In this document: positions 1,917-60,160 of the stretch, piece after piece
Layout of the letters: each line of letters begins with the position of its first letter
Position numbering within the stretch: the first letter of the stretch is position 1
Assembly: GCF_039654945.1 (NCBI RefSeq)
Contig: NW_027361678.1
Location: 5,704,001-5,768,000, forward strand
Length of the DNA: 64,000 bases
Direction of reading: 5' to 3'
Origin: Dendrobates tinctorius
Lineage: Eukaryota
Position numbers and translations under genes: made by a program
The notes under the pieces: model-generated
Seen by the model: only the letters and a program-made list of their open reading frames with translations
The model's database searches: none
Told to the model about the DNA's origin: nothing

Positions 1917-2833
1917 TGTTGTGAACTCATTTTCTGGTTTACCTCTGGCTTCTGGTGAGGGTGGTGGAGCTGGCTGTGTTGACAGAGGAGTCGTGAGTTC
2001 TCCATCCGGGCTCCCTCTAGTGGTGACAGTAGGTAATGAAGCTGATCTAAACGGCAGAGACCTGCCACCTGAGGAGGAGGACTGTGAGTGGACATCAGGA
2101 GTCTCTGACTGGATTTAAGTCAGCCGACTCCCTAATTTTGGGCTGGTGATTTTCCTGCCCTGAGGTTCTGGTTTCCAGTTCTGTTCCTGCCTTCTCAAGC
2201 TAAGTGTGCTCTGCTATTTTTTCACATGAGATTTGGTCTGGTTTACTCAGTTTTTGTGGTCAGCCAGCTCCTGCTGGGGCTGTGTTGAATTTCCATTCTT
2301 CTTATGTCTCTGTTTATGCCAGTTTGCTTTTTGTCCCTGATCAGTTTGGTCTCTTTTTGCTCTGTCTTCAGAATATACCAGAGTGCTGATATAGGGAATT
2401 GAAGTCTAGCGACTTCAGGGTTTTTGTTATCAGAAAGTGTTGGACTTTTTTTGGCAGGGTTTTGTGCGTGATTGCAGACAGCATCTTTCCTTTCCTGTCC
2501 TTTCTAGTTAGTGTGGGCCCCATCATTTGCTCAGCCTATTTTTCTATCTGTGTTTGTGTTTTCATCTTGTCTCACCGACAATACATGTTTGGGGGCTCTT
2601 TATTGCTTTGGGGTCTGCTCTGGGGCAGTTTAGATTTCCCCTTTTCTTGCTTTAGGCTTATTTAGTTCTCCTGCTGTGACGAGGCATCTAGGATCTTCGT
2701 AGGCACGCTCCACGGCTACTGCTAGTTGTGTGGATAGGATCAGGGGTCTGCAATCCGCTTAGTTACCAACCTCTCTGGTTTTCTGAGGCTTAGCTTGTTT
2801 TTGTTTTTCCTCCTCGGTGACTCATTCATAACA
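1917..2833 (+). repeat. 3' LTR of Gypsy family A copy 1
   Basis: TGTTGTGAA...TTCATAACA termini, directly after the PPT; reverse complement of the LTRs at 7582, 12638 and 54003. Confidence 0.93.
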
Positions 2834-6470: not shown

Positions 6471-8469
6471 GTGTGGTAAAACGCACAAATTTCAGGGTAT
6501 AATATAAGGTAGTACATGTCTTAATTATGTAGCAGTATATAGCTGTAATCCAGAATACCCACTGAACCCCTGAATCCTCATACATTCCTCACCCTCTGTT
6601 TTTTAATTGGTACGTCTGTACTCTGATTTTTCCCCTGACTTTAATTCCATGTATCATACTTCAAACTTACTGTATGCATATTGATATGCCCATGCTCCTC
6701 ACATCTAGTCTTATCCTTCCGTCTTATCCTGCCTCTTTCTTCAGCTTTGATGCTAGTCAAATGTCCTATTAACTGCAATCTGTTAATTGCTCCCTGCTGT
6801 GAGCCATCCTCCAGCCCCCTCCTCCTCCTCCTCCTTCTCTCACTCACCTGGCTTCATTTCATGGACATTTGAATGGTATAAGTTGAACAGAGCAGGTCAG
6901 ATATGACCTTGGTCAGATTTGACATCATTTGAAGTGACATCTTTAAAGTGTTACATCAGAAATATACCAGAAATAGTCCAGAAATCGGTCAGAAGGTAAG
7001 AATAACCACTGCTTTATTATTTTACTTGCCTTTCTTTTCTTACCCTGTTCTTTAACCATGCTCACATTTGCCCTCACCATTTTTGCTCCACTAATATTCA
7101 CTCTCCTCCGCCATCCTAAAACCCATGCACCCTCGAACCAAATAACTATCTCCCCCTCTCGCTCCCCCCACCTCGCTTCATCAGCAGACCTGCTCCTTAA
7201 CCTCAGACCTCTCCTACTAAAATACAATACAAGTCGGTCACACTTTTTCACCCACGTGCTTTCCCTTTCTTTGCTTATTCTCACTGCTGGCGACATATCC
7301 CCTAATCCTGGCCCCCCCCGCCTCATACATCCCACTAATCATCACCCCTATCTTTCTCACACTAAGATAAACTACCGCAATCCCTCACACTTAAAACCTG
7401 TGCCACTGACCCCCACCCTCCCGCACCCTCTCTCTGGAGCACTTTGGAATGCCCGCTCCATCTGCAACAAGCTCCACATGATCCAGCTTTACCTCCCGCA
7501 ACCTTTCCTTCCTGGCCCTCACTGAGACCTGGCTGACACCCCCTGACACGGCCTCCCCGGCCGCACTGAGTTATGGCGGCCTATTATGAATGGGTCACTG
7601 AGGAGAAAAAAGCAAAACAAGCTAAGTCACAGAAAACTAGAGAAGTTGGTAACTATGCAGATTGCAGATCCCTGATCTTACCACACAACTAGCAGTAGCC
7701 GTGGAGCGTGCCTACGATGTTCCTAGACGCCTCGTCACGGCCGGAGGACTAAATAAGCCTAAAGAAAGAAAAGGGAAAACTAACTGCCCCAGAGCAGACC
7801 CCAAAGGAATAGATAGCCCCCACACATGTATTGACAGTGAAACAAGATGAAGGCACAAACACAGGCAGGAAAATAGGCTTAGCAAATGATGGGGCCCAAA
7901 CTAACTAGACAGGAAAGGAAAGGAAGGACACTGTCTGCAACCTGCAAAAAAACCCTACAAAAATAAAGTCCAACACTTCTGATAGCAAAATTAACCCTGA
8001 AGTCACTAGACTTCTTCCACTATATCAGCACTCTGAAATATTCTGAGGCAGAGCAAAAAGAGACCGAACTAGTAAGGGACAAAAAGCCAATTGGCAAAAT
8101 ACTGATAAATAAGAGTGGAAATTCAGCACAGTCCCCAGCAGGGGCTGGCTGACCACACCAAAAAACTGAATAGACCAACAAAATCAAGTGTGAACATTAG
8201 CAAAAAAACTTAGCTTTAGATGACTGGAACAGAGCTGAAAACCAAGAGCTGACAAGCCAGAAGGAATCACCAGCAACTGAATAGGGCGTCGGCTGTCTTA
8301 AATCCAATCTGAGACTCCTGAGATCCAATCGTCATCCTGATTCTCAGGTGGCAGATCTCCACCGATCAAATCAGCCTCTCTACCTCCTGTTACCACCAGA
8401 GGGAGTCTGGAAGGAGAACTCGCAACTGGTGAACCAGAGAATGAACTCACAACAGTACCCCCCCTTGAG

Positions 8470-11400
8470 GAGGGGTCACCGAACCCTCATCCACGCCACC
8501 AGGCCGATCAGGATGGGCCCGGTGAAAAGCACGAACCAATCTATTGGCATGAATATCGGAGGCAGAGACCCAAGAATTATCCTCCTGACCATAACCTTTC
8601 CATTTGACCAAATACTGGAGTCTCCGTCTAACCAAACGAGAAATATTTTCTATACCTCATATTCCACATTGCCTTCAACCAACACAGGGTCAGGAGGTGC
8701 TGCTATAGGAACCACTGGCTCAACAAACCTCTTCAACAGAGATTTGTGAAATACGTTATGGATCTTAAATGTAGCTGGAAGAGCCAATCGAAACGAAACA
8801 GGATTAAGAATTTCCAAAATCTTATAAGGACCAATAAATCTTGGCTTAAAGAATATTCTTGGACGACAACCAAACCATATCACCCACTTTAAACCGGGGA
8901 CCAATGGTCCTATGCCGGTTGGAAAATCGCTGGGCCTTTTCCTGACAGAGTGACAACTTATCCACCACTTGGTCCCATATCTGCTGCATTCTCTTAACCA
9001 CAGTGTCCACACCTGGGCAGGACGAAGATTCCACTTGCCCTGAAGAGAATCGAGGATGAAGGATGGAAACCCAAAATTACAGAAAAAGGGTGACATCAAA
9101 GTGGCAGAACTAGCTCTATTGTTGAGTGCGAATTCGGCCAAGGGCAAAAATGAGACCCAATCATCCTGATCAGCAGATATAAAACATCTCAAATAAGACT
9201 CCAAGGTCTCGTTTGTTCTCTCAGTCTGTCCATTGGTCTGGGGATGAAACGCGGAGGAGAAGGATAACTGAATTCCCATATTGGAACAAAAGACTTTCCA
9301 GAATCTGGAAACAAACTGGACTCCTCTGTCGGACACAATATTCTCAGGAATCCCATGTAACCGAACCACCTGTTGTAAAAACAAGGGCACCAACTCAGCG
9401 GAAGGTGGCAACTTTGGGAGTAGTACAAGATGGACCATCTTCGAAAATCTAATCACAAATCACCCAGATAACAGTCATTCTCTGAGAGACAGGAAGATCA
9501 GAAATGAAATCCATTGAGATATGGGTCCATGGCCTCTTGGGCACCGGCAAGGGCATCAACAACCCACTAGAACGAGAACAGGGTTTAGACCGAGAACAAG
9601 TCCCACAGGACTGTACAAAATTCCTGACGTCACGAGATAAGGCAGGCCACCAAAAGGACCAACTCACCAAATCTCTGGTACCAAAAATACCTGGATGACC
9701 AGCCAATGCAGAGCAATGAATTTCAGACATCACTCTCTTTCTCCACTGGTCAGGAACATACAATTTTCCCATAGGGCAACGCTCAGGTTTATCCTCCTGA
9801 AATTTCTCCAGGGCGCGTCTCAAATCGGGCGAAATGGCAGAAAGAACTACCCCCTCACCTAGGATGGTAGTAGGCTTGGTCACACTAAGAGAATCGGCAA
9901 AGAAACTCCTAGAAAGGGCGTCTGCCTTAGCATTCTTAGTGCCCAGAAGAAAAGAGACCACAAAATTAAAACGCGTGAAAAACAAGGCCCATCCAGCCTG
10001 TCTAGGATTCAAGCGTTTGGCCGACTCCAGATAAATCAAATTATTGTGATCGGTGAGGACCACAACTTGATGTCTATCTCCCTCCAACCAATGTCTCCAC
10101 TCCTCAAATGCCCACTTCATGGCCAGCAATTCCCGATTCCCCACGTCATAGTTGCGTTCAGATGGGGAGAACTTTCAAGAAAAGAAGGCACAGGGATTCA
10201 TCTTAGAAGTCACAGGGTCATTTTGGGACAAAACAGCTCCTGCACCAATCTCAGAAGCATCTACCTCCACCTGAAATGGAAGTGAGACATCAGGTTGCCG
10301 TAAAACTGGAGCTGAAGTAAATCTCTGCTTAAGCTCCTGAAATGTTGAGATAGCCTCAGGACACCAATTCAGCACATCAGCGCCCTTCTTGGTCTGATCA
10401 GTCAGTGGTTTGACAATACCAGTAAAATTACCTATAAATTTACGATAGAAATTAGCAAAACCTAAAAACTTCTGGAGGGCCTTCAAAGAAGTAGGCTGAA
10501 CCCAATCATAAATGGCCTGTACCTTGGCCGGGTCCATTTCAATAGTCGATGGAGATAAGATAAATCCCAAAAAAGAAATCCTCTGTACACCAAAGAGGCA
10601 TTTCGATCCCTTAACAAACAGGGATTTCTCCCTCAAAATCCGGAACACAGTCCGGACGTGTTCCACATGAGAATCCCAATCACTAGAAAAGATCAAAATA
10701 TCATCAAGATAGATGATCAAAAACTTATCCACAAGGTCACGGAAAATATCATTCATAAAGGACTGGAAGACAGAAGGGGCATTAGTGAGCCCAAAAGGCA
10801 TCGCCAGGTACTCAAAATGTCCCTCCGGAGTATTAAACGCCGTCTTCCATTCATCCCCATGCTTGATGCGAATAAGATTATACGCCCCCCTGAGGTCAAG
10901 CTTAGTAAACCAGCAGGCACTCTTAACTCTGGAGAATAAATCAGACATCAGAGGTAACGGGTACTGATATTTAACCGTCATCTTGTTAAGGGAACTATAA
11001 TCAATACACGGTCTTAATGAACCATCTTTCTTGGCCACAGAAAAACCCCCAGCACCTAAGGATGACGAGGATGGTCTAATATGACCCTTCTCCAATGACT
11101 CCTTAATATAGGATCGCATAGCATCATGTTCGGGTACTGATAAGTTGAAAAGCCAACCCTTGGGAAATTTACACCCAGGCATCAACTCAATTGCACAGTC
11201 ATAACTCCTATGAGGAGGCAAAGACGCAGACTTGCTCTCACTAAATACATCAGAAAAATCGGCTAGATAATCAGGAATATCATGAGACTGAGGAGAGGTG
11301 GAGAAAACAGGAGCGTCCCTAAGAACACACTGACAACCCCAACTCACCACAGACCCAGATTTCCAATCCAAAACTGGATTATGAGTTTGCAACAAAGGAA

Positions 11401-11640
11401 AACCCAGAACAATAGTATCATGCAGATTATGCAGCACCAAAAATTTACAATTTTCTTGGTGGTCTGGGGCAACTCGCATTGTCACCTGGGTCCAAAACTG
11501 AGGTTTATTCTCCGCCAAAGGAGTAGCATCAATACCCCTCAAAGGAATATGCGTCCGCAGCGGCGTCATGGAAAAACCACAACGTTTAACAAAGTCCAAA
11601 TCCATCAGATTCAATGCTGCTCCTGAATCCACAAAAGCCT
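8470..11640 (-). pseudogene. pol: pol (PR-RT-RNase H-IN-chromodomain) of family A copy 2, frameshifted
   Basis: DSGA protease, LRPCIDY, MPFGLTNAP and YLDDILIF (RT), VDAS (RNase H), ISMDFI/SDRG (IN), YLVKWKGY. Confidence 0.95.
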
Positions 11641-12491
11641 TCGTGGAAAACGTGGATAAAGGAGCAGATCAGAGTAATTGCCAAAAGAAACTTAGGTTGT
11701 ATACTGCCCACAGCAAATGTGTGTGCAAAACGTTTCTCTCGTTTTGGGCAGACAGAAATAATATGAGAGGCGTCTCCACAGAAAAAACACAGCTTATTAC
11801 GCCTTCTAAACTCCTGATGTTGCGCCCTAGACAAAACCCCATCACATTGCATAGGTTCAGACGTTTGTTCAAAAGGTGGCAGCGCCTCCAGTGTAGTTTT
11901 CCGTTCACGTAAACGCCGATCAACTTGAATGGCTAATAACATAGAATCATCCAGGCCAGAGGGAACAGGAAATCCCATCATAACATCTTTTACGGTCTCT
12001 GATAAACCCTTCCGAAAGAGAGCTGCCAATGCACTATCATTCCATGTAGTAAGGACCGCCCACTTTCGGAATTTTTGACAGTATAACTCTGCAGAATCCT
12101 GACCCTGGTTTAATGCCAGCAGGGTTCTCTCAGCTTGATCAACAGCATTAGGTTCATCATACAACAACCCCAAGGCTTGAAAAAATGCATCCACATTAGT
12201 CAGAATAGGATTTTCAGGTGTCAGAGAAAAAGCCCAATCCTTGGGATCGCCGCGCAGCAAGTAGATGACAATTTTAACCTGCTGCACAGAGCTCCCCGAT
12301 GAGTTAGGCTTCAAGGCCAAAAATAATTTACAATTATTCTTAAAATTCAGGAATTTAGACCGATCCCCAGAAAACACATCAGGAATAGGGATCTTAGGTT
12401 CAGCAGCATGTGACTGAATGAGGTAGGTGGAAATTCCCTGCACTTCAGCAGCCAGCTGCTCCACACGATCAGACAATTGCTTAATCTCTAT
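11586..12491 (-). pseudogene. gag: gag (PEG10/RTL1-like capsid with CCHC zinc knuckle) of family A copy 2
   Basis: PKIPIPDVFSGDRSKF, LNQGQDSAELYCQKF, CFFCGDASHIISVC; the probable start ATG appears mutated to ATA at 12489-12491. Confidence 0.9.
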
Positions 12492-14115
12492 TAGGAAAAA
12501 GAAAAAAAATCCTCCTACGGCCCCAGAGAAAAAAGAAGAAAAAATATATAAAAAAAAAAAAAAAAGTGTCAATTTTTTTTTTAACAACTTTTTCCTGCTT
12601 TTGAGTACCCTAGAATCTACGGTATGGCTGGTGATTCTGTTATGAATGGGTCACCGAGGAGAAAAAAGCAAAACAAGCAAAGTCACAGAAGACCAGAGAG
12701 GTTGGTAACTATGCAGATTGCAGATCCCTGATCTTACCTCACAACTAGCAGTAGACGTGGAGCATGTCTACGATGTTCCTAGATGCCTCATCATGGCCGG
12801 AGGACTAAATAAGCCTAAAGCAAAAAAGGGAAAACTAACTGCCCCAGAGCAGACCCCAAAGGAATAGATAGCCCCCACACATATTGACGGTGAAACAAGA
12901 TGAAGGCCCAAACACAGGCAGGAAAATAGGCTTAGCAAATGATGGAGTCCAAACTAACTAGACAGGAAAGGAAAGGAAAGACACTGTCTGCAACCTACAA
13001 AAAAACCCTACAAAAATCAAGTCCAACACTTCTGATAGCAAAATTAACCCTGAAGTCACTAGACTTCTCCCACTATATCAGCACTCTGAAATATTCTGAG
13101 ACAGAGCAAAAAGAGACCGAACTAGTAAGGGACAAAAAGCCAATTGGCAAAATATTGATATATAAGAGTGGAAATTTAGCACAGCCCCCAGCAGGGGCTG
13201 GCTGACCACACCAAAAAACTGAATAGACCAACAAAATCAAGTGTGAACATTAGCAGAAAAACTTAGCTTTAGATGACTGGAACAGAGCTGAAAACCAAGA
13301 GCTGACAAGCCAGAAGGAATCACCAGCAACTGAATAGGGCGTCGGCTGTCTTAAATCCAATCTGAGACTCCTGAGATCCAATCGTCATCCTCATTCTCAG
13401 GAGGCAGATCTCCACCGATCAAATCAGCCTCTCTACCTCCTGTTACCACCAGAGGGAGTCTGGAAGGAGAACTCGCAACTGGTGAACCAGAGAATGAACT
13501 CACAACAGCGGCCTCCACTTTACCCATACTCCTCGCCCTGGCAACAGACATGGTGGAGGAGTGGGTTTCCTCCTTTCTAAAAACTGCTCCTTCAGCCCTT
13601 TCCAACCCCCACCCTTCCTTATCCTCCCTTCTTTCGAGATTCACTCTGTCCGTATCTACTCTCCCTCTAATCTCCAAATGGCTGTCATATACCGACCATC
13701 GGGCTCAGTCACTGCCTTCATCGACCAATTCTCCACCTGGCTCCTCCACTTTCTCTCAGCTGACATCCCCACCATAATCATGGGGGACTTCAACATCCCC
13801 ATTGACACCCACCAGCCATCAGCCTCCAAACTCCTTTCACTTACCTCATCCTTTGAACTTAATCAGTGGTCCTCCACAGCCACCCACATGGACATACATT
13901 AGACCTCATCTTCACCCGTCTCTGTTCCCTACCCAATCTCACAACCTCTCCCTTCCCCCTATCTGACCACCATCTACTCACCTTCTCATCCTCATCCTTC
14001 TCACCTGCCCCCCATGTCCAGCCACTAGCACATCCTCGCAGAAACCTCGCACACCTAGACACTCACAGACTCTCAGACTCTCTTCTACCTCTGTCCTCCA
14101 TATGTTCACTCCACA

Positions 14116-16519: not shown

Positions 16520-19500
16520 GTCACTATGGTGAAGTTGCACCAGTATAGGTAGGGCTGCAGCTTCCACAGGGCTCACACTTTGGTGAGACACTCCTTCTCA
16601 ACAGTGGCATAGGCTACGTCCCGGTGTAAGTGCTTGCGGCTGATGAACATCACTGGATGCTCCTCCCCTCATTTACCTGGCTGAGCACGGCACCTAGGCC
16701 AAATGCACTGGTATCTGTTGAATTATAAATGACCAGGTGAATTCCAGGGCTTGTAGAACTGGGGAACTGACAATGGCATCCTTCAGCGCTGTGAAGGACC
16801 GCTCACTGTCATCTGTCCAGTTGACTGCTTGCAGTAGCTTCTTTTTGGTGAAGTCTGTCAGAATCTTAGCAAAAGGTACTATAGTTAGGGATGAACTTTC
16901 TTTAGTACCCTGTCGTACCTAAGAAGGACATCACTTGCTTCTCAGTGTTGGGGGTAGACCAGGAGGTGATAGCATCAACCGTCTCTTGCTCTCCCTGGGT
17001 TTCAGAGTTCCAATGCCCACTCGGTGACAGTGATACTGCACCCCATCATGCCTTTCTGACATTTCCTGGCTTTTTAGTGAAACCAGTGCCCTGGATCTGC
17101 CTGAGCACCTGCTCCACATTCCCGGGTGTTCCTCCCCGGTGGAACTGAAAGACGGCAATGTTGTTAGGTAGGCAACAGCAAACTCATCTAATCCCTCGAG
17201 TAGCTGGTTGACCAATTGCTGAAAAGTGGCAGGAGCATTTCTCATGCCAAAAAGGGCATGAAGATGAATTCATACAGTCCAAATGGGGTAATAATAATAA
17301 TAATAATCTTTATTTATATAGCGCCAACATATTCCGCAGCGCTTTACAGTTTAACAGTTTCAAAACACAAGTCATAAGTAACAACGCTAACAATACAATA
17401 ATTAAAGCAAAATAAGACGAAATAAGACGACCCTGCTCGTGAGAGCGTACAATCTACAATGAGGTGAGGGAGATACAGAGTACAGGTGTGTATTTACAAT
17501 GATGTATTTACAATGAAGGTCCAGCCATCTTGCGGGAGTGAAGGATGGATGGAGATAGTGAATGGGCTACACACGCACACTTACACAGAGAATGACTTTG
17601 ATTAGTGAATGTGATAAGCCGCTCTGAACAGGTGTGTTTTGAGGGAGCACCTAAAACTATGCAAATTGTGGATAGTCCTGATTTCTTGGGGTAGAGCATT
17701 CCAGAGGATAGGAGCAGCACGGGAGAAGTCTTGGAGTTGGGAGTGGGAGGTACGGATTAGTGCAGAGGTTAGTCGAAAGTCGTTTGCAGAGCGCAGCGAT
17801 CGGCTAGGCCGATAGACAGAAATGAGAGAAGAGATGTAAGGGGGTGCCGCACTGTGGAGAGCTTTGTGGGTGAGAACAAGTACTTTGAATTGGATCCTAT
17901 AATGAATGGGCAGCCAATGTAAGGACTGGCGAAGAGCGGACGCGTCCGAGTACCGATTACCCAGATGGACGATCCTGGCTGCTGCATTAAGTATGGACTG
18001 GAGATGGGATAGTCGAGTGACGGGGAGGCCAATTAATAGAGCGTTGCAGTAATCCAGGCGAGAGTGGATCAATGCAACAGTGAGGGTTTTTGTTGTTTCC
18101 ATAGTGAGAAAAGGGCGGATTCTAGAGATGTTCTTTAGGTGTAAGCGGCAAGAGCGGGCAAGGGATTGTATATGGGATGTAAAGGAGAGATTGGTGTCAA
18201 ACATAACACCCAGACAGCGCACCTGCTGCCGGGGTGTTATTGTGGTACCACCCACGGAGAGGGAAATGTCAGATTTAGGGAGGTTAGTAGACGGCGGGAG
18301 CAGAAGAAGTTCAGTTTTGGAGAGGTTGAGTTTCAGATAGAGAGCGGACATGATATTGGAGACTGCGGACAGACAGTCACTGGCGTTCTGTAGTACAGCG
18401 GGGGTAAGGTCGGGGGAAGACGTGTATAGTTGTGTGTCATCAGCATAAAGATGGTACTGAAAGCCAAATCTGATGATGGTCTGTCCAATTGGGGCCGTGT
18501 AGAGAGAGAAAAGAAGGGGGCCAAGGACTGAGCCCTGAGGTACCCCGACAGCAAGAGGAAGAGGAGATGACGTGGAGCCAGAGAACAAAACACTGAAGGA
18601 GCGGTCAGAGAGATAGGAAGAGAACCAGGAGAGTGCAGTGTCCTTAATGCCTAGTGACTGGAGCCTAGAGAGTAGGAGATGGTGGTCAACAGTATCGAAA
18701 GCTGCAGATAGGTCAAGAAGAATGAGCAGAGAGTGGTCACCGTTACGTTTTGCTGTCAGAAGGTCATTGGTCACTTTGATGAGTGCAGTTTCAGTCGAAT
18801 GTAGGGGGCGGAAGCCGGACTGTGAAGGGTCTAGAAGGGAGTGAATGGAGAGGTAACGGGTAAGGCGGGAGTAAACTAGGCGTTCCAAAAGTTTAGAGAT
18901 GAAGGGGAGATTGGAGACTGGTCTGTAGTTGTTTGTGCAGGATGGGTCGAGAGCAGGTTTCTTTAGTAGTGGAGTAACGATGGCGTGTTTGAAGGAGGAT
19001 GGGAAAATGCCCGAGGAGAGGGAGAGATTAAAGATTGTAGTTAGGTGGGTTGTGACGACTGGAGAGAGAGACTGGAGGAGATGTGAGGGAATGGGGTCGG
19101 TAGTGCATGTAGTCGGACAAGAAGAAGAGAGGAGTCTGGAGACTTCTTCTTCTGTTATGGGATCAAATGTGGAGAGTGAGCCAGGGGAGATGTAGGAAGG
19201 GATGGGAGTCACAGCACTTGGTGGTTGGGAGCAGATTTCTTGACGGATATTATCTATTTTTTCTGTAAAGTGGGAGGCCAGGTCATCAGCACAAATGTCT
19301 GTGATAGGGGCTTGTGCTTTTGGCCTGAGGAGGGAGTGAAAAGTGTCAAAAAGTTTCTTGGGGTTGTTGGCTAGTGAGGAGATCAGGGTGGTGAAGTAGG
19401 TCTGTTTGGCAAGGTGAAGGGCAGCGTTATAGGTTCTTAACATAAATTTGAAGTGGATGAAGTCTTCTGGTGTGCGGGTTTTTCTCCATAGGCGTTCAGC

Positions 19501-21460
19501 ACTCCTGGAGCATCGCTGGAGAAGTTGAGTTTGCGATGTGAGCCAGGGCTCTTTTACTCTGTGTTTGGAGGTTCTGAGGGTGAGGGGAGCTACTTGGTCA
19601 AGGGTGCTTCTAAGAGTGTCATTGTAGTGATAAACAGCCAGATTAGGACAGGAAAGAGAGGAGATTGGGGACAGAGATGAGTGTAGGGAATCTGAAAGTG
19701 TCTGAGGGTTAATAGCTTGTAGATTTCTGACTGTGTGGTAGGTAGGAATGAGCTGGGGTGGGCGAGGATTTGTGAGCGTGAAGGAGAGAATGTTGTGGTC
19801 AGAGTGGAAGCGGTGAGTTGTTTAGGTGGGAGATTGAACAGAGCCGGCAGAAGACCAGATCAAGGGTGTTACCGTCCTTATGTGTCTCAGAGGTTGAAAG
19901 CTGTGAGAGGCCTAGAGAGGTGGTTAGTGATAGAAGCTGGGATGCAGATGTGGAATTAGGGCTGTTAATGGGGGATGTTGAAGTCTCCCAGGATGAGGGT
20001 TGGTGGTTCTGAGGAGATGAAGTGTGGCAGCCAGGCTGAAAAGTGGTCAAGGAAGAGGGTGGGTGAGCCTGGGGGCCGGTATATGACCGCTACCCTGAGG
20101 GAGAGGGGACGGAAGAGCCTGATGGTGTGGACCTCAAAAGAAGGGAATAAGAGTGATGGGACTGGGGGGGATGACCTGGAAAGTGCATTGTGGGGACAGG
20201 AGTATGCCAACTCCACCACCAGGTCTGTTTGTGGGTCTCGGGGAGTGAGAGAATTGTAAGCCACCTTAGGAAATGGCAGCAGGAGAGACAGTGTCAGAAT
20301 CCTGAATCCAGGTTTCAGTGAGGGCCAACAGATTAAGAGAGTTGTTCAGAAAGTAGTTGTGTAGGAAAGGAAGCTTGTTACAAGCAGACCATGGATTCCA
20401 GAGGGCACAATAAAAAAATTGAGATGAGGGAGTGCAAGTAATGTTAATCAGATTATTGTGGTTTCGATATGAGGTAGGGTAGGGGTCGAGGTTGGGGGAT
20501 GGTGGACCAGGGTTGGGGGAGATGTCCCCTGAAATCAGTAGGAGAAGGAAGATAAAGAGCCAATAGTTGTTGGAGTTGTAAGTAGTTTTTTTCTGCGATG
20601 TGTTTGGGCAAGATGGGCTGAGGTTTCTCAGGAAGGTGAGGAGTGTGTGGGAGCTGTACATGGGAGAGGGAAGTATAGAGGGGCTGATGTGTATGAGTCG
20701 TGATGGAGGGGGGATAGGGTGATGAATGTGGATGGCAAGGGAACACAGGAGGATAAAAATAAAGCACATGGTTAAAGGGGAAGGCAAGGTGTGGGTTACC
20801 TGACTCCTGCCCTGACTAACTGCCATGTATAACTGCCGTTTTGCTGGATGCTTATCTTCTGTGATGCTTTGCTTATGGGATGCTTGCGTGCTGTACCCCA
20901 CACTGCGTGCTTCCCCTTAGCAACTACTACATATATAGGTCACACTACAGGGTCAGGAGAGAGGGATTGTGGGAGATGGTTGGGTATAATTTGGCAGCTG
21001 GGGCCAGCACACCAGGGGATGGGTAATGAAGATGGACCTCTCCTGTGCTTCCTTGGACATAGGAATCTGCCAGTAACCTTGACTCAGTTCCATGATTGTC
21101 AAATATAAGGCACCGGCTAAGCGATCTGGCAGCTCATTGATACGTGGTATTGGGTACTCATCATGGGCTGTGATGGCATTTAGCTTTCTGTAGTTCACGC
21201 TCAGCCGGGTCATTTTTTCGGGACCAGGACTACAGGCGATGCTCACGCTCTTTTGGATCACTTCCAGGCATAACATTTCATCTATCACCCTTTTGATGTC
21301 CTTTGCACCTCTAGGGAGACACGGTATGCACGTTGGTGGACAGGGTGGTGACTCCCTGTGTCCAGCTGGTGGATGGCTAGCTTCCCTGGTATACAAGTGA
21401 AGATGGTCACGTAAGGCCGGAACACCTCCCGCAGCTGGGACCTCTGGTCCATGGATAGCT
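16520..21460 (-). mobile_element. pol: Gypsy RT-RNase H fragment (third family) interrupted by the L2 at 17293-21018
   Basis: NYRKLNAIT and GYWQIPMS..FIT (right part) continue as ITPFGLYEF and MRNAPATFQ (left part). Confidence 0.85.
17293..21018 (-). mobile_element. Near full-length L2 LINE with (TAA)n 3' tail; single EN-RT ORF from ~20769 to 17602 with a few lesions
   Basis: 613-aa RT ORF ([24 protein letters not shown]), APE motifs (LTETW, GDFN, TLDL), TAA-repeat tail at 17289-17307, flanking ATGGG(G)TAAT duplication. Confidence 0.95.
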
Positions 21461-53919: not shown

Positions 53920-55389
53920 TATATTGCTTCCTCCCCACTGGGGAGGTGCCTGAGCAACCTTTCTGTTTAGCAGTCCATGTTGGGTAAGGTTGCATACCAG
54001 TCTGTTATGATTGGGTCACCGAGGAGGAAAGCAAGACCAGGCTAAGCCACAGAAAACCAGAGAGGTTGGTAACTAAGCGGATTGCAGACCCCTGATCCTA
54101 TCCACACAACTAGCAGTAGCTGTGGAGCGTACCTACGATGATCCTAGATGCCTCGACACAGCCGGAGAACTAAATAAGCGTAAAAAAAAAGAAAGGGGAA
54201 ATCTAAACTGCCCCAGAGCAAACATATATTGTCGGTGAGACAAGATGAAAACACAAACGCAGGTAGGAAAATAGACTGAGCAAACGATGGAGCCCACACT
54301 AACTAGACAGGACAGGAAAGGAAAGACTCTGTGTGCAATCACGCAAAAACCCTGCAAAAAATGCCCAACACATCTGATAGAAAAATACTGAAGTCACTAG
54401 ACTTCGCCCATTATATCAGCACTCTGGTATATTCTGAAAGCAGAGCAAAAAGAGGCCAATCTAATAAGGGACATAAACAAACTGGCACAAGCAGTAACAT
54501 AAGGATGGAAATTCAGCACAGCCCCAGCCGGAGCTGGCTGAACACACAAAACTGAAATAGACAAAACCAGATCAAATGTGAACAATAGCAAAAGAACACT
54601 TAGTTGAGCATGCAGGGACTGAGCTGGAAACTAAGACCTTAGGAGGCAGGAAAAAATCAGCAGGGATAGAGGGAGTCGGCTGTCTTAAATCCAGTCAGAA
54701 ACTCCATATCTCCAGTCATCCTCCTCATTATCAGGTGGCAGGCCTCAGTTAATTGGATCAGCTCCATTACTTCCAGTAACCACTAGAGGGAGCCCGGAAA
54801 GAGAACTCGCGACTAGAGTTGAGCGATACCGTCCGATACTTCAAAGTATCGTATCGGATGGTATCGGCCGATCTTTAAAAAAAGTATCGGTATCGCCGAT
54901 TCCGATACCGGAAGTCCCATTCAAGTCTATGGGACTTCCGGTATCGGAATAAGAAAAACCCTTTCCTGCCCTTGTACAGCCTCTCTGGGGTCTGTACGGG
55001 CCTTTTCGGGGGGCTGTGCCGGCCTGCCAGGCTGTCTGTGCAGGCTCCGGTGGTCTGTGCCGGCCTGCCGGTGGTCTGTGCAGGCTCCGGGGGGCTGTGC
55101 CGGCCTGCCGGGGGGCTGTGCCGGCCTGCCGGGGGGCTGTGCAGGCTCCGGGGGGCTGTGCCGGCCTGCCGGGGGGCTGTGCCGGCCTGCCGGGGGGCTG
55201 TGCCGGCCTGCCGGTGGTCTGTGCAGGCTCCGGGGGTCTGTGCAGGCATCGTCCGATGGGACTACAAGTCCCATCGGGCGATGCCTGCTACCATGACAGT
55301 GATTGACACATTAGCCAATGATGGGACAGTAGTAGTCCCATCATCCGGCTAATGTGTTAAATGTAAAAAAAAAAAAAAAAAAAAAAAAT

Positions 55390-56270
55390 TACATGCTACA
55401 TACATACAACATGCATACTACATACATGCTACATTCATACTACATACTACATACATGCTACATTCATACTACATAAATACTACATGCAACATACATACTA
55501 CATATATACTACATGCATGCTACATACATACTGCATGCTACATACATACCACATATATACTACATACATACTACATGCATGCTACATGCATGCTACATGC
55601 TACATACATAACACATATATACTACATGCATGCTACATACATACTACATGCTACATACTACATATATACTACATGCATGCTACATACTACATGCTACATA
55701 CATACTACATATATACTACATGCATGCTACATACATACTGCATGCTACATGCATGCTACATACATACTACATACATACTACATGCTACATACATACTACA
55801 TATATACTACATACATACTACATACATACTACATGCATGCTACATGCATGCTACATACATACCACATACATAACACATATATACTACATGCATGCTACAT
55901 ACATACTACATGCTACATACATACCATATACATACTACATGCATGCTACATACATACTACATGCATGCTACATACATACTACATGCTACATACATACTAC
56001 ATATATACTACATGCATGCTACATACATACTACATGCTACATACATACTACATATATACTACATGCATGCTACATACTACATACTACATATATACTACAT
56101 GCATGCTACATACATACTACATGCTACATACATACCACATACATACTACATATATACTACATGCATGCTACATACATACTGCATGCTACATGCATGCTAC
56201 ATACATACTACATACATACTACATGCTACATACATACCACATATATACTACATACATACAATACATTCAT
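55390..56270. repeat. Complex TACA/CATG satellite (left arm of the foldback)
   Basis: Mixed CATACATACTA and CATGCTA units. Confidence 0.95.
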
Positions 56271-56934
56271 ACAATACATACATAGACATACAGTACATAT
56301 AACATAGAGTAACATACTTACCAATACTTGTCACATTGTTCCCCGAAGCCATTGTCTTTTCCGGAATAAATATTAACATAACAAACCACAAAAATACTCA
56401 CCCACGATCCGAAGCAGTCCACGAGTGTGTCCCACGACGATCTTGGGTAGAGAACTGCAGCATCAGCTGTTGCTGCCGTTCTCTACGGGCTGCAGGAATC
56501 CAATGACGGAAGGTAGGTATCCTTCCGCACTGTATTCCTCCGCCACTTAAAAAAAAAAAAAGTCCCTAGTCTCACTTTATGCCATTGCTGTGTGGGAAAT
56601 TCCCACACAGCAATGGCATAAAGTGAGACTAGGGACTTTTTTTTTTTTAAGTGGCGGAGGAATACAGTGCGGAAGGATACCTACCTTCCGTCATTGGATT
56701 CCTGCAGCCCGTAGAGAACGGCAGCATCATCTGATGCTGCAGTTCTCTACCCAAGATCGTCGTGGGACACACTCGTGGACTGCTTCGGATCGTGGGTGAG
56801 TATTTTTGTGGTTTGTTATGTTAATATTTATTCCGGAAAAGACAATGGCTTCGGGGAACAATGTGACAAGTATTGGTAAGTATGTTACTCTATGTTATAT
56901 GTACTGTATGTCTATGTATGTATTGTATGAATGT

Positions 56935-57951
56935 ATTGTATGTATGTAGTATATATGTGGTATGTATGTAGCATGTAGTATGTATGTAGTATGTATGTAG
57001 CATGCATGTAGCATGTAGTATGTATGTAGCATGCATGTAGTATATATGTAGTATGTATGTAGCATGCATGTAGTATATATGTAGCATGTATGTAGTATGT
57101 ATGTGGTATGTATGTAGCATGTAGTATGTATGTAGCATGCATGTAGTATATATGTAGTATGTATGTAGCATGTAGTATGTATGTAGTATGTATGTAGTAT
57201 GTATGTGGTATGTATGTAGCATGTAGTATGTATGTAGCATGCATGTAGTATATATGTAGTATGTATGTAGCATGTAGTATGTATGTAGTATGTATGTAGT
57301 ATGTATGTAGTATGTATGTAGCATGCAGTATGTATGTAGCATGTATGTAGTATGTATGTAGTATATATGTAGTATGTATGCAGCATGTAGTATGTATGTA
57401 GCATGCATGTAGTATATATGTAGTATGTATGTAGCATGCATGTAGTATGTATGTAGTATGTATGTAGTATGTATGTAGCATGCAGTATGTATGTAGCATG
57501 TATGTAGTATGTATGTAGTATATATGTAGTATGTATGTAGCATGCATGTAGTATGTATGTAGCATGTAGTATGTATGTAGCATGCATGTAGTATGTATGT
57601 AGCATGTATGTAGTATGTATGTAGCATGTATGTAGTATGTATGTAGCATGTAGTATGTATGTAGCATGCATGTAGTATGTATGTAGTATGTATGTAGCAT
57701 GCATGTAGTATGTATGTAGTATGTATGTAGTATGTATGTAGCATGCAGTATGTATGTAGCATGTATGTAGTATGTATGTAGTATATATGTAGTATGTATG
57801 TAGCATGCATGTAGTATGTATGTAGCATGTAGTATGTATGTAGCATGCATGTAGTATGTATGTAGCATGTATGTAGTATGTATGTAGCATGTATGTAGTA
57901 TGTATGTAGCATGTAGTATGTATGTAGCATGCATGTAGTATGTATGTAGTA
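56935..57951. repeat. Complex TGTA satellite (right arm, inverted)
   Basis: Reverse complement of the left-arm units, with a different copy number. Confidence 0.95.
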
Positions 57952-58895
57952 TTTTTTTTTTTTTAACATTTAACACATTAGCCGGATGATGGGACTACTA
58001 CTGTCCCATCATTGGCTAATGTGTCAATCACTGTCATGGTAGCAGGCATCGCCCGATGGGACTTGTAGTCCCATCGGACGATGCTTGCACAGACCCCCGG
58101 ACATCAGCACAGCCCCCCGGCAGGCCGGTACAGACCCCCACAGGGTGCACAGACCACCGGCAGGCCGGCACAGCCCCCCGGCAGGCCGGTACAGACCCCG
58201 GGCAGTCCACACAGCCCCCCGGCAGGCCGGCACAGCCCGCCGGCAGAGACCCCCGGAAGGCCCGAAATGACGGCGCATCATGATGCGCACACACCGCGCA
58301 TCATGATGACGTCAGGCCGTCAATCAACTGAACTTCCGATTCCGATGCCGAATTCCGATATTGAAAAAATATCGGAAGTCGGTATCGGAATTCCGATACA
58401 GCAAGTATCGGCCGATACCCGATACTTGCGGTATCGGAATGCTCAACACTACTCGCGACCCCTCTGTCAATATAACCAGCTCCACTACCTTCACTAGTAA
58501 CCAGAGGTAGGCCATAAAGCGAATTCACAACACCAGTCCCTGCTGCACTCTGGTGCAGATCCTGCCTGCTGCACACTGGTGCAGATCCTGTCTGCTGCGC
58601 TCCAGTGCAGATCATGCCTGCTGCGCTCTGATGTAGACTTTGCTGCACTCTGATATGAACTCTGCCTACTGCACTCTGATACAAACTCTTCCTGCTGCTC
58701 CATCCAGTTGGTCCTCTGTGTCCAACTGCTGCGTGTCCGTTGGTCTGTCCTGGAGTGGCACCTGGCGTTCATTGGGAACCAAGTCTAACCTCACCATCAG
58801 AGGCTCTAATGAACAGTCAGGTGCTCACTTAGTCATGCCCCTCCAGGCTCTCCGCGGTTTGTGGCACAGTGGTTCCACAAACCACCTCTGTGACA

Positions 58896-60160
58896 CATAG
58901 CTAGTAATGGTCATGGGAATGGAAGCATAACTAGTAATGGTCAAATGGTCATGGCAATGGGAGCATATCTAGTAATAGTCATAGGAATGGGAGCATAACT
59001 AGTAATGGTCATGGGAATGGAAGCATAACTAGTAATGGTCAAATGGTCATGGCAATGGGAGCATATCTAGTAATAGTCATAGGAATGGGAGCATAACTAG
59101 TAATGGTCATGGGAATGGAAGCATAACTAGTAATGGTCAAATGGTCATGGCAATGGGAGCATATCTAGTAATAGTCATAGGAATGGGAGCATAACTAGTA
59201 ATGGTCATTGGAATGAGAGCATATCCAGTAATGTTCATAGGAATGGGATCATAGCTAGTAATGGTCATGGGAATGGGAGCATAGTTAGTAATGATCATGG
59301 GAATGAGAGCATAGCTAGTAATGGGAATGAGAGAATAACTAGTAATGGTCATGGAAATGAAAGCATAGCTAGTAATGGTCATGGGAATGGGAGCACAGCT
59401 AGTAATCATCATGGGAATAGTAGCATATCTAGTAATGGTCACGGGAATGAGGCATAGCTAGCAATGATCATGAGAATGGGAGCATAGCTAGTAATGGTCA
59501 GGGGAATGGGAGCATAGCTAGTAATGGTCATGAGAATAGGAGCATAGCTAGTAATGGTCATGGGAATAGGAGCATAACTAGTAATGGTCATGGGAATAGG
59601 AGCATAGCTAGTAATGGTCATGACAATGGGAGCATAGCTAGTAATAGTCATGGGAATGGGAGCACAGATAATGGTCATGGGAATGGGAGCATATCGAGTC
59701 ATGGGGATGGGACCATAGCTAGTAATGGTCATGGGGATGGGAGCATAGCTAGTAATGGTCATGGCAATGGGAGCATATCTAGTAATGCTCTTGGGAATGG
59801 GAGCACAGCTAGTTATGGTCATGGGAATGGTAGCATACCTAGTATTGGTCATGGCAATGGGAGCATATCTAGTAATGGTCATGGGAATGGGAGCATAGCT
59901 AGTAATTTTCATGGAAATAGGAGCATAGCTAGAAATGGTCATGGGAATGGTGGGCATGGTAATGGGGCATAGCTAGTAATTGCACTGGAATGAGAGCATA
60001 GCTAGTAATGGGCATGATAATGGGAGCATAGCTAGTAATGGTCATGGGAATGAGAGCATAGCTAGTAATGGTCATGGGAATAGGAGCATAGCTAGTAATG
60101 GTCATCGGAATTGGAGCATAGCTAGTAATGGTCATGGAAATTAGGGCATAACTAGTAACA
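58896..60160. repeat. 30-bp minisatellite (GCATAGCTAGTAATGGTCATGGGAATGGGA), ~42 copies
   Basis: Tandem copies; a 98-bp higher-order unit at the left end. Confidence 0.97.

Follow-up and report, generated by a model that had tools for sequence, protein, structure and literature searches.

The element and its insertion site

The window analysed in this study comprises 64,000 nucleotides of the genome of the dyeing poison frog Dendrobates tinctorius (contig NW_027361678.1, positions 5,704,001 to 5,768,000), and all coordinates given below refer to this window. The sequence of interest is an element of 3,638 bp with a G+C content of 42% at positions 54814-58451, most of which is a single giant palindrome. 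A preliminary description of the same DNA had proposed a mobile foldback transposon with hAT-type ends, inserted in a Gypsy-type solo long terminal repeat (LTR).

The left tip of the element, which begins at 54814, reads TAGAGTTGAGC, and the right tip (58441-58451) reads TAGTGTTGAGC as its reverse complement; the two match at 10 of 11 positions. The pattern TAGWGTTGAGC was present at two sites in the 64 kb, with 0.10 expected by chance, and both sites are the tips of the element. Neither by sequence comparison nor by pattern search were further copies of the element or further ends found within the window. Directly outside both tips, at 54806-54813 and 58452-58459, stands the identical 8-bp sequence CTCGCGAC.

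An unoccupied paralogous site is present in the same window. The LTR at 1917-2833, which lies on the opposite strand, reads through the insertion point with a single CTCACGAC at about 1990-1997. When the flanks of the element were aligned to this LTR, the left flank stopped at 1990 and the right flank began at 1997, the overlap being the 8-mer itself. The host LTR (54003-58532) starts with TG, ends with CA and is bordered by a 6-bp duplication of its own, CCAGTC. After removal of the insertion it could be aligned from end to end, with 77-82% identity, to the LTRs at 1917-2833, 7581-8455 and 12637-13508. The latter two are 96.2% identical to each other and enclose coding regions in the order gag, reverse transcriptase, RNase H, integrase, and therefore belong to a Ty3/Gypsy element. 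Adjoining the host LTR no Gypsy interior was found, and it is therefore a solo LTR. The target duplication and the empty site in a related LTR establish the sequence at 54814-58451 as a transposon insertion. Thus, the TAG(A/T)GTTGAGC terminal inverted repeats with an exact 8-bp target site duplication and the position inside a Gypsy solo LTR, both given in the preliminary description, were recovered.

With respect to the superfamily, YARNG is the consensus of hAT terminal inverted repeats and many hAT elements begin with TAG; the 11-bp tips of the frog element (TAGAG.../TAGTG...) are short inverted repeats of the YARNG type. The duplication CTCGCGAC, with T at position 2 and A at position 7, fits nTnnnnAn, the target preference of the hAT element Hermes (PMC6900584), a fit which for a single site has a chance of about 1 in 12. 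Moreover, the motif CCGATAC occurs at 15 sites in the 64 kb, and 12 of these are located in the terminal ~200 bp of the element, six per end and on both strands; there are none in the 3.2-kb interior and three in the remaining 60 kb. Such clusters are the usual layout of hAT transposase binding sites, and the motifs are considered here as putative sites of this kind. The earlier designation of the ends as hAT-type is retained on the basis of the 8-bp nTnnnnAn duplication, the short TAG-type ends and the subterminal motif clusters.

No coding capacity was detected. Among the open reading frames (ORFs) of the element with at least 100 aa, no Pfam domain was found above the cut-off, and the long ORFs are stop-free readings of its satellite. 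Matches to hexapeptide-repeat models, all of them below the cut-off, were rejected as artefacts of the periodic satellite translation. A hAT transposase was likewise absent among all window ORFs of at least 170 aa, for which Pfam yielded Gypsy and LINE (long interspersed nuclear element) proteins only. The Rfam scan of 54500-58800 returned no RNA family and no hammerhead; the perfect hairpin gave only sub-threshold matches to models of unrelated microRNA precursors, which were discarded.

Anatomy of the palindrome and its surroundings

When the left half of the element was aligned globally with the reverse complement of the right half, the point of symmetry fell on one base, the A at position 56599, within GGGAA-A-TTCCC. 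The innermost part of the palindrome is perfect over 49+1+49 nt. A comparison of 56158-56598 with 56600-57039 revealed three substitutions in ~441 nt and a single length difference of 1 nt, located in an A13/T12 run, and the arms of the unique core (56290-56598 and 56600-56907) are 99.0% identical. The 882-nt core folds as a single DNA hairpin with -551 kcal/mol, compared with -100 kcal/mol for shuffled sequence.

From the tip inwards, each arm consists of a GC-rich 21-bp array, a unique segment of 120 bp, a homopolymer run, about 1 kb of satellite and 310 bp of unique core. The unique segments at 55245-55366 and 57966-58084 are identical over 119 nt as reverse complements. The repetitive modules differ between the left and the right arm: the GC-rich arrays have 11.8 versus 6.8 copies, the homopolymer runs are A24 versus T13, and the TACA-type satellite with its 11-bp unit extends over 903 versus 1,048 bp. 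The satellite arms can be aligned at only ~80% identity with many gaps, their best periods are 51 bp and 62/84 bp, respectively, and their unit census is unequal, with CTACATACATA present 17 times in the left and 42 times in the right arm. A megablast self-comparison of the satellites gave no rows.

The mirror symmetry spans ~55090 to ~58240 around 56599 and begins inside the GC-rich 21-bp arrays, and about 90% of the length of the element is one inverted repeat around one base. This palindrome of 3.2 kb lies between two unlike ends: the outermost ~190 bp of the left side and ~205 bp of the right side are unmirrored and have in common only the 11-bp tip and short motifs.

The anatomy given in the preliminary description was confirmed by these comparisons, namely core arms of more than 400 bp with few mismatches and a 1-nt loop, the inward order of 21-bp block, mirrored segment, poly(A)/poly(T), satellite and core with each module in its place, and a satellite copy number that differs between the arms although the unique parts are nearly identical (99-100%). 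One correction concerns the extent of the symmetry, which does not run to the tips; the outer 190-205 bp do not mirror each other. The term foldback holds for the shape of the element; the inverted repeat itself is an internal cargo between unlike hAT ends and not a long terminal repeat. The coordinates of all modules are compiled in Table 1.

Table 1. Modules of the palindromic element, its host LTR and the related unoccupied site (window coordinates).
Feature	Position	Strand	Remark
Related Gypsy LTR with unoccupied target site, single CTCACGAC	1917-2833	-	
Left target duplication CCAGTC of the host solo LTR	53997-54002	.	6-mer recurs at 58533-58538
Gypsy-type solo LTR (TG..CA) hosting the hAT element	54003-58532	-	LTR alignment
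Left target site duplication CTCGCGAC	54806-54813	.	Repeated at right; single CTCACGAC at empty site
Left terminal inverted repeat TAGAGTTGAGC	54814-54824	+	
Left subterminal region, unmirrored; 6 CCGATAC/GTATCGG motifs and local hairpin	54814-55006	+	CpG observed/expected (o/e) 1.37
GC-rich 21-bp tandem array, left arm, 11.8 copies; symmetry starts here	55007-55247	+	
Unique mirrored segment, left arm, two local hairpins	55245-55366	+	
Poly(A), 24 nt	55365-55388	+	
TACA-type satellite with 11-bp unit, left arm, 903 bp	55390-56292	+	
Unique core, left arm	56290-56598	+	Near-perfect mirror from 56158
Centre of symmetry, single A	56599-56599	.	
Unique core, right arm	56600-56907	+	
Satellite, right arm, 1,048 bp, TGTA orientation	56906-57953	+	
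Poly(T), 13 nt	57952-57964	+	
Unique mirrored segment, right arm	57966-58084	+	
GC-rich 21-bp tandem array, right arm, 6.8 copies	58087-58246	+	
Right subterminal region, unmirrored; 6 CCGATAC/GTATCGG motifs and GCGCATCATGATGCGC palindrome	58247-58451	+	CpG o/e 1.65
Right terminal inverted repeat, TAGTGTTGAGC on - strand	58441-58451	-	
Right target site duplication CTCGCGAC	58452-58459	.	

Several smaller features were observed within the arms. Each core arm contains a local hairpin of 40 nt (56447-56486 and 56711-56750; GTAGAGAAC...GTTCTCTAC), and two of the three substitutions between the inner arms, 56467 and 56470, are located in its loop-proximal part; at 56470 the contigs placed on the core (see below) carry the alternative letter at about one third of the family depth. 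On the + strand of the right-arm unique core (56772-56900) the splice-donor-like motifs GTGAGTA (~56778) and GTAAGTA (~56878) are present, and on the basis of these motifs only, a leader exon and intron of some autonomous element might have been the source of the unique core. In the GC-rich array at 55007-55247, G6 runs recur at regular spacing in the 21-bp units, where the left arm has them on the + strand and the right arm on the - strand, and from their sequence these units could form G-quadruplexes.

Further features were noted elsewhere in the window. The full-length Ty3/Gypsy element at 7581-13508 lies on the - strand, has LTRs of 875 bp and is flanked by GCGGCC on both sides; its reading frames for gag, reverse transcriptase, RNase H and integrase are interrupted, giving four ORFs. 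Another related Gypsy element, on the + strand, is represented by its 3' part at 20-2833, where it is cut by the window start, and encodes RNase H, integrase and a chromodomain; its 3' LTR is the holder of the empty site. Directly after the duplication of the solo LTR, a 26-bp tandem repeat (CCTGCTGCACTCTGGTGCAGATCCTG) follows at 58539-58698 with about six copies in two blocks. A tandem array of 1.26 kb at 58896-60158, 360 bp downstream of the solo LTR, is built of ~40 copies of a 30-bp unit that are 80-85% alike, with higher-order periods of 60 and 90 bp. Furthermore, an ORF of 613 aa with a LINE-like reverse-transcriptase domain is located on the - strand at 17602-19443, adjoining an L2 element that the preliminary description had placed at 20503-21018.

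Family abundance and alternative explanations

Public sequencing data were used for the analysis of copies outside the window. Words sampled from the stretch were present in 20 records from eight studies, other organisms included, and 14 runs of one organism contained at least half of them. Contigs of selected runs, derived from a graph with k=31, were placed on the 631-bp unique core only. In the DNA run X1, 2,395 contigs were placed on the core, 1,159 of them with at least 99% identity, 764 with 95-99% and 472 with 90-95%. The DNA run X5, which comes from an independent study of the same organism, contributed 417 contigs, and run X15, by a guess possibly RNA, 34 contigs, several of them with 100% identity. 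Run X17, from another organism, had no contig on the core, which does not prove absence. Scans of metagenome contigs for an exact word of the centre and for one of the core yielded no match, in a collection where frog DNA is not to be expected. In X1 and X5 each of the 29 bins of the core was covered, and the centre bin (56593-56614) was covered by contigs of X1, X5 and X15.

Rare joints were found that skip 33-187 bp around the centre; their depth is 10-109, compared with several hundred thousand for the surroundings. In addition, one contig of X15 extends 8 nt past the centre and then continues directly with satellite. These joints and the X15 contig look like copies with central or one-sided deletions, and such deletion is the known fate of long palindromes. 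The variant pair 56361 C>A and 56836 G>T was considered as a case of co-variation between the arms and rejected, as contigs with a single change fit both arms equally.

The contig data indicate that the element is not a one-off but belongs to a family that is very abundant in the dyeing poison frog. The mobility of the family, already asserted in the preliminary description, is supported by the target duplication, the empty site and the abundance of core contigs in X1 and X5. Taken together, the element is best explained as a non-autonomous hAT-type transposon of foldback architecture that carries a giant palindrome as cargo and has no middle domain, the palindrome having been inherited as part of the family rather than having arisen at 54814-58451. 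As a whole, this explanation appears to us very probable.

Several points weigh against it. The terminal repeat is short, with 11 bp and one mismatch, and duplications of 8 bp are also made in some other superfamilies (P, Merlin, Zisupton). An autonomous partner with the same ends was not found in the search, which was limited to the 64-kb window. There is only one copy in the window, and the evidence for the family comes from short contigs. Finally, none of the listed contigs bridges the centre with 31 nt on both sides, because beyond the centre the k=31 graph re-enters the same words in reverse; locus-specific contig support for the centre is missing.

This last point would also be in line with an assembly artefact, in which a fold-back chimeric long read had joined template and complement as one molecule, and long palindromes without spacer are indeed a known product of such reads. 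However, a chimeric read would mirror the flanks and give identical ends. Here the ends are unlike, the duplication is direct and the flanks match the empty site, and an artefact is therefore excluded on structure alone; besides, the arms are unequal in array length and unit make-up, and contigs of three runs cover the centre bin. We regard this explanation as extremely improbable. A one-off internal inverted duplication of an ordinary, non-palindromic hAT element at this locus would agree with the fact that a single copy is readable in full, and the X15 contig running from the centre through 8 nt into satellite shows that copies without the second core arm exist. It is rendered very unlikely by the thousands of contig variants over core and centre in independent samples, and the low-depth joints around the centre have the look of derivatives that a palindromic master gave rise to by deletion rather than of its ancestors. 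A mirror layout would also result from two inverted copies in a head-to-head composite, such as a double-Ds or a macrotransposon moved by its outer ends, and composites of this kind are known for the hAT elements of maize. Yet the end sequence is found at the two outer tips only, with no inner ends at or near the centre, which is located within unique core and has a 1-nt spacer, and CCGATAC is absent from the interior, so that a head-to-head pair is excluded. The outer ends are, moreover, unlike each other in the way of the left and right ends of one element, and a composite is accordingly judged highly improbable.

A separate question is whether an active process maintains the likeness of the arms, be it intra-element gene conversion or snap-back copying in each round of gap repair. 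Such upkeep is suggested by unique segments that are 99-100% alike although the arrays between them differ in copy number, period and unit census. However, tandem arrays change far faster than unique sequence, and the contrast needs no conversion; that the unique parts stayed alike through many array changes fits fast array turnover as well as homogenisation. The mirrored variants at 56361 and 56836 are uninformative in this respect. The CpG o/e ratio is 1.4-1.7 in the ends, compared with 0.44 in the window and 0.30-0.41 in the measured LTRs, which points to an insertion that is probably young on the scale of CpG decay. In a young insertion the identity of the unique arm segments in the 54814-58451 copy does not in itself require conversion. 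Active upkeep is consequently viewed as a tentative proposal with somewhat less than an even chance.

Origin of the palindrome and comparison with known systems

The mobilisation of the element can be outlined from the mechanism of hAT transposition. A transposase whose gene lies at another place in the genome would bind the 11-bp ends together with the CCGATAC clusters in the ~200 bp beside each end. Acting in trans, it would cut the element and paste it into the Gypsy solo LTR, where a stagger of 8 bp would leave CTCGCGAC on both sides. Effects of the inserted element on DNA structure, RNA or silencing, among them the cruciform extrusion and the kb-long hairpin RNA put forward in the preliminary description, are treated here as hypothetical.

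For the palindrome itself, we infer that snap-back of a nascent strand (fold-back priming) is the most likely route. At the centre stands GTGGGAA-A-TTCCCAC, a short native inverted repeat. While an excision gap was being repaired, a nascent strand may have snapped back at this repeat and copied the left arm backwards, and the inverted GC-rich arrays would then have provided the homology for re-joining to the right end. A re-joining via these arrays would explain why the symmetry starts inside them and why the tips are unlike. Fold-back priming makes inverted duplications in yeast and human (PMC10622511, PMC7467729, PMC3907307).

In a more speculative and unlikely scenario, the centre of one base may be a relic of the chemistry of hAT elements, and transposition itself may renew the palindrome. 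When a hAT transposase excises an element, the flanking DNA is left with covalently closed hairpins (PMC6900584, PMC4763223). The eight bases ending at the centre, GTGGGAA(A/T), also fit nTnnnnAn. In work on Hermes the first nick is said to lie 1 nt into the flank, which would give a hairpin tip of exactly one unpaired base. A hairpin from the excision of a nested hAT element could thus have been copied instead of opened, yielding the palindrome, and in each later round of gap repair snap-back copying would restore the second arm with the first as template. If this were the case, transposition would be coupled to a process that keeps a giant palindrome perfect in thousands of copies, and the family could act as a permanent supply of long hairpin RNA directed against hAT elements.

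Few known sequences are as unstable as long palindromes with almost no spacer. A cut-and-paste transposon which has, as the contig counts suggest, seeded very many sites of a vertebrate genome with such a palindrome would offer natural replicates for studying the tolerance, deletion or correction of long palindromes in vertebrate germ lines, a possible input of long hairpin RNA from such elements into small-RNA silencing, and how transposons breed and scatter satellite arrays. The family is also a hazard for annotation, since short-read assemblies break at it and its copies may be taken for artefacts of chimeric reads. What the copy described here contributes is confirmation and anatomical detail, not a new mechanism; it supplies an empty site within the same window, a solo-LTR context with its own duplication, and a map of the limits of the symmetry.

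According to the genome paper of the dyeing poison frog, hAT elements make up 3.9% of the assembly, and the words foldback, palindrome and MITE appear nowhere in its main text (PMC11152451). A published description of such a palindromic hAT family was not found, in a search that left out most subscription journals and is therefore no proof, and the palindromic build has apparently not been described for hAT before.

Among known systems, non-autonomous hAT elements, i.e. deletion derivatives of the maize Ds type and miniature transposable elements with inverted repeats (MITEs) of hAT, come close with respect to the 8-bp nTnnnnAn duplication, the short TAG-type ends, the unlike and motif-packed subterminal regions, the lack of a transposase and the high copy number. 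The frog element differs from them in that it has no sequence traceable to a transposase gene and consists for ~90% of one palindrome with a 1-nt centre and kilobase satellite arrays. As for MITEs, it is non-coding and present in high copy number, but with 3.6 kb it is far above their size limit (< ~800 bp).

With the foldback elements (Drosophila FB, Galileo, Tetris and Arabidopsis FARE) it shares modular inverted arms that form most of the element, tandem repeats of variable copy number and, as in most of their copies, the absence of genes; the arms of Tetris also carry satellite-forming repeats (PMC4079207). In foldbacks, however, the inverted repeats reach the tips around a middle domain, whereas the frog element has unlike hAT-type tips and a middle domain of one base. 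FB, Galileo and Tetris have Mutator- or P-type ends and duplications of 9 bp, 7 bp and 8-10 bp, respectively, a lineage feature from which the frog element departs with its hAT-type ends and hAT-type 8-bp duplication. The described foldbacks have been placed in the Mutator and P superfamilies, and it has been proposed that their architecture may evolve independently in different lineages (PMC5499845, PMC4079207). The frog family would extend this architecture to hAT and supports the view of its repeated evolution.

Finally, the fold-back-primed inverted duplications of yeast and human resemble the frog palindrome in being long and centred on a short native inverted repeat. They are of chromosome scale and usually have a spacer of several bases or more, whereas the frog palindrome resides within a mobile element and has been amplified with its family.

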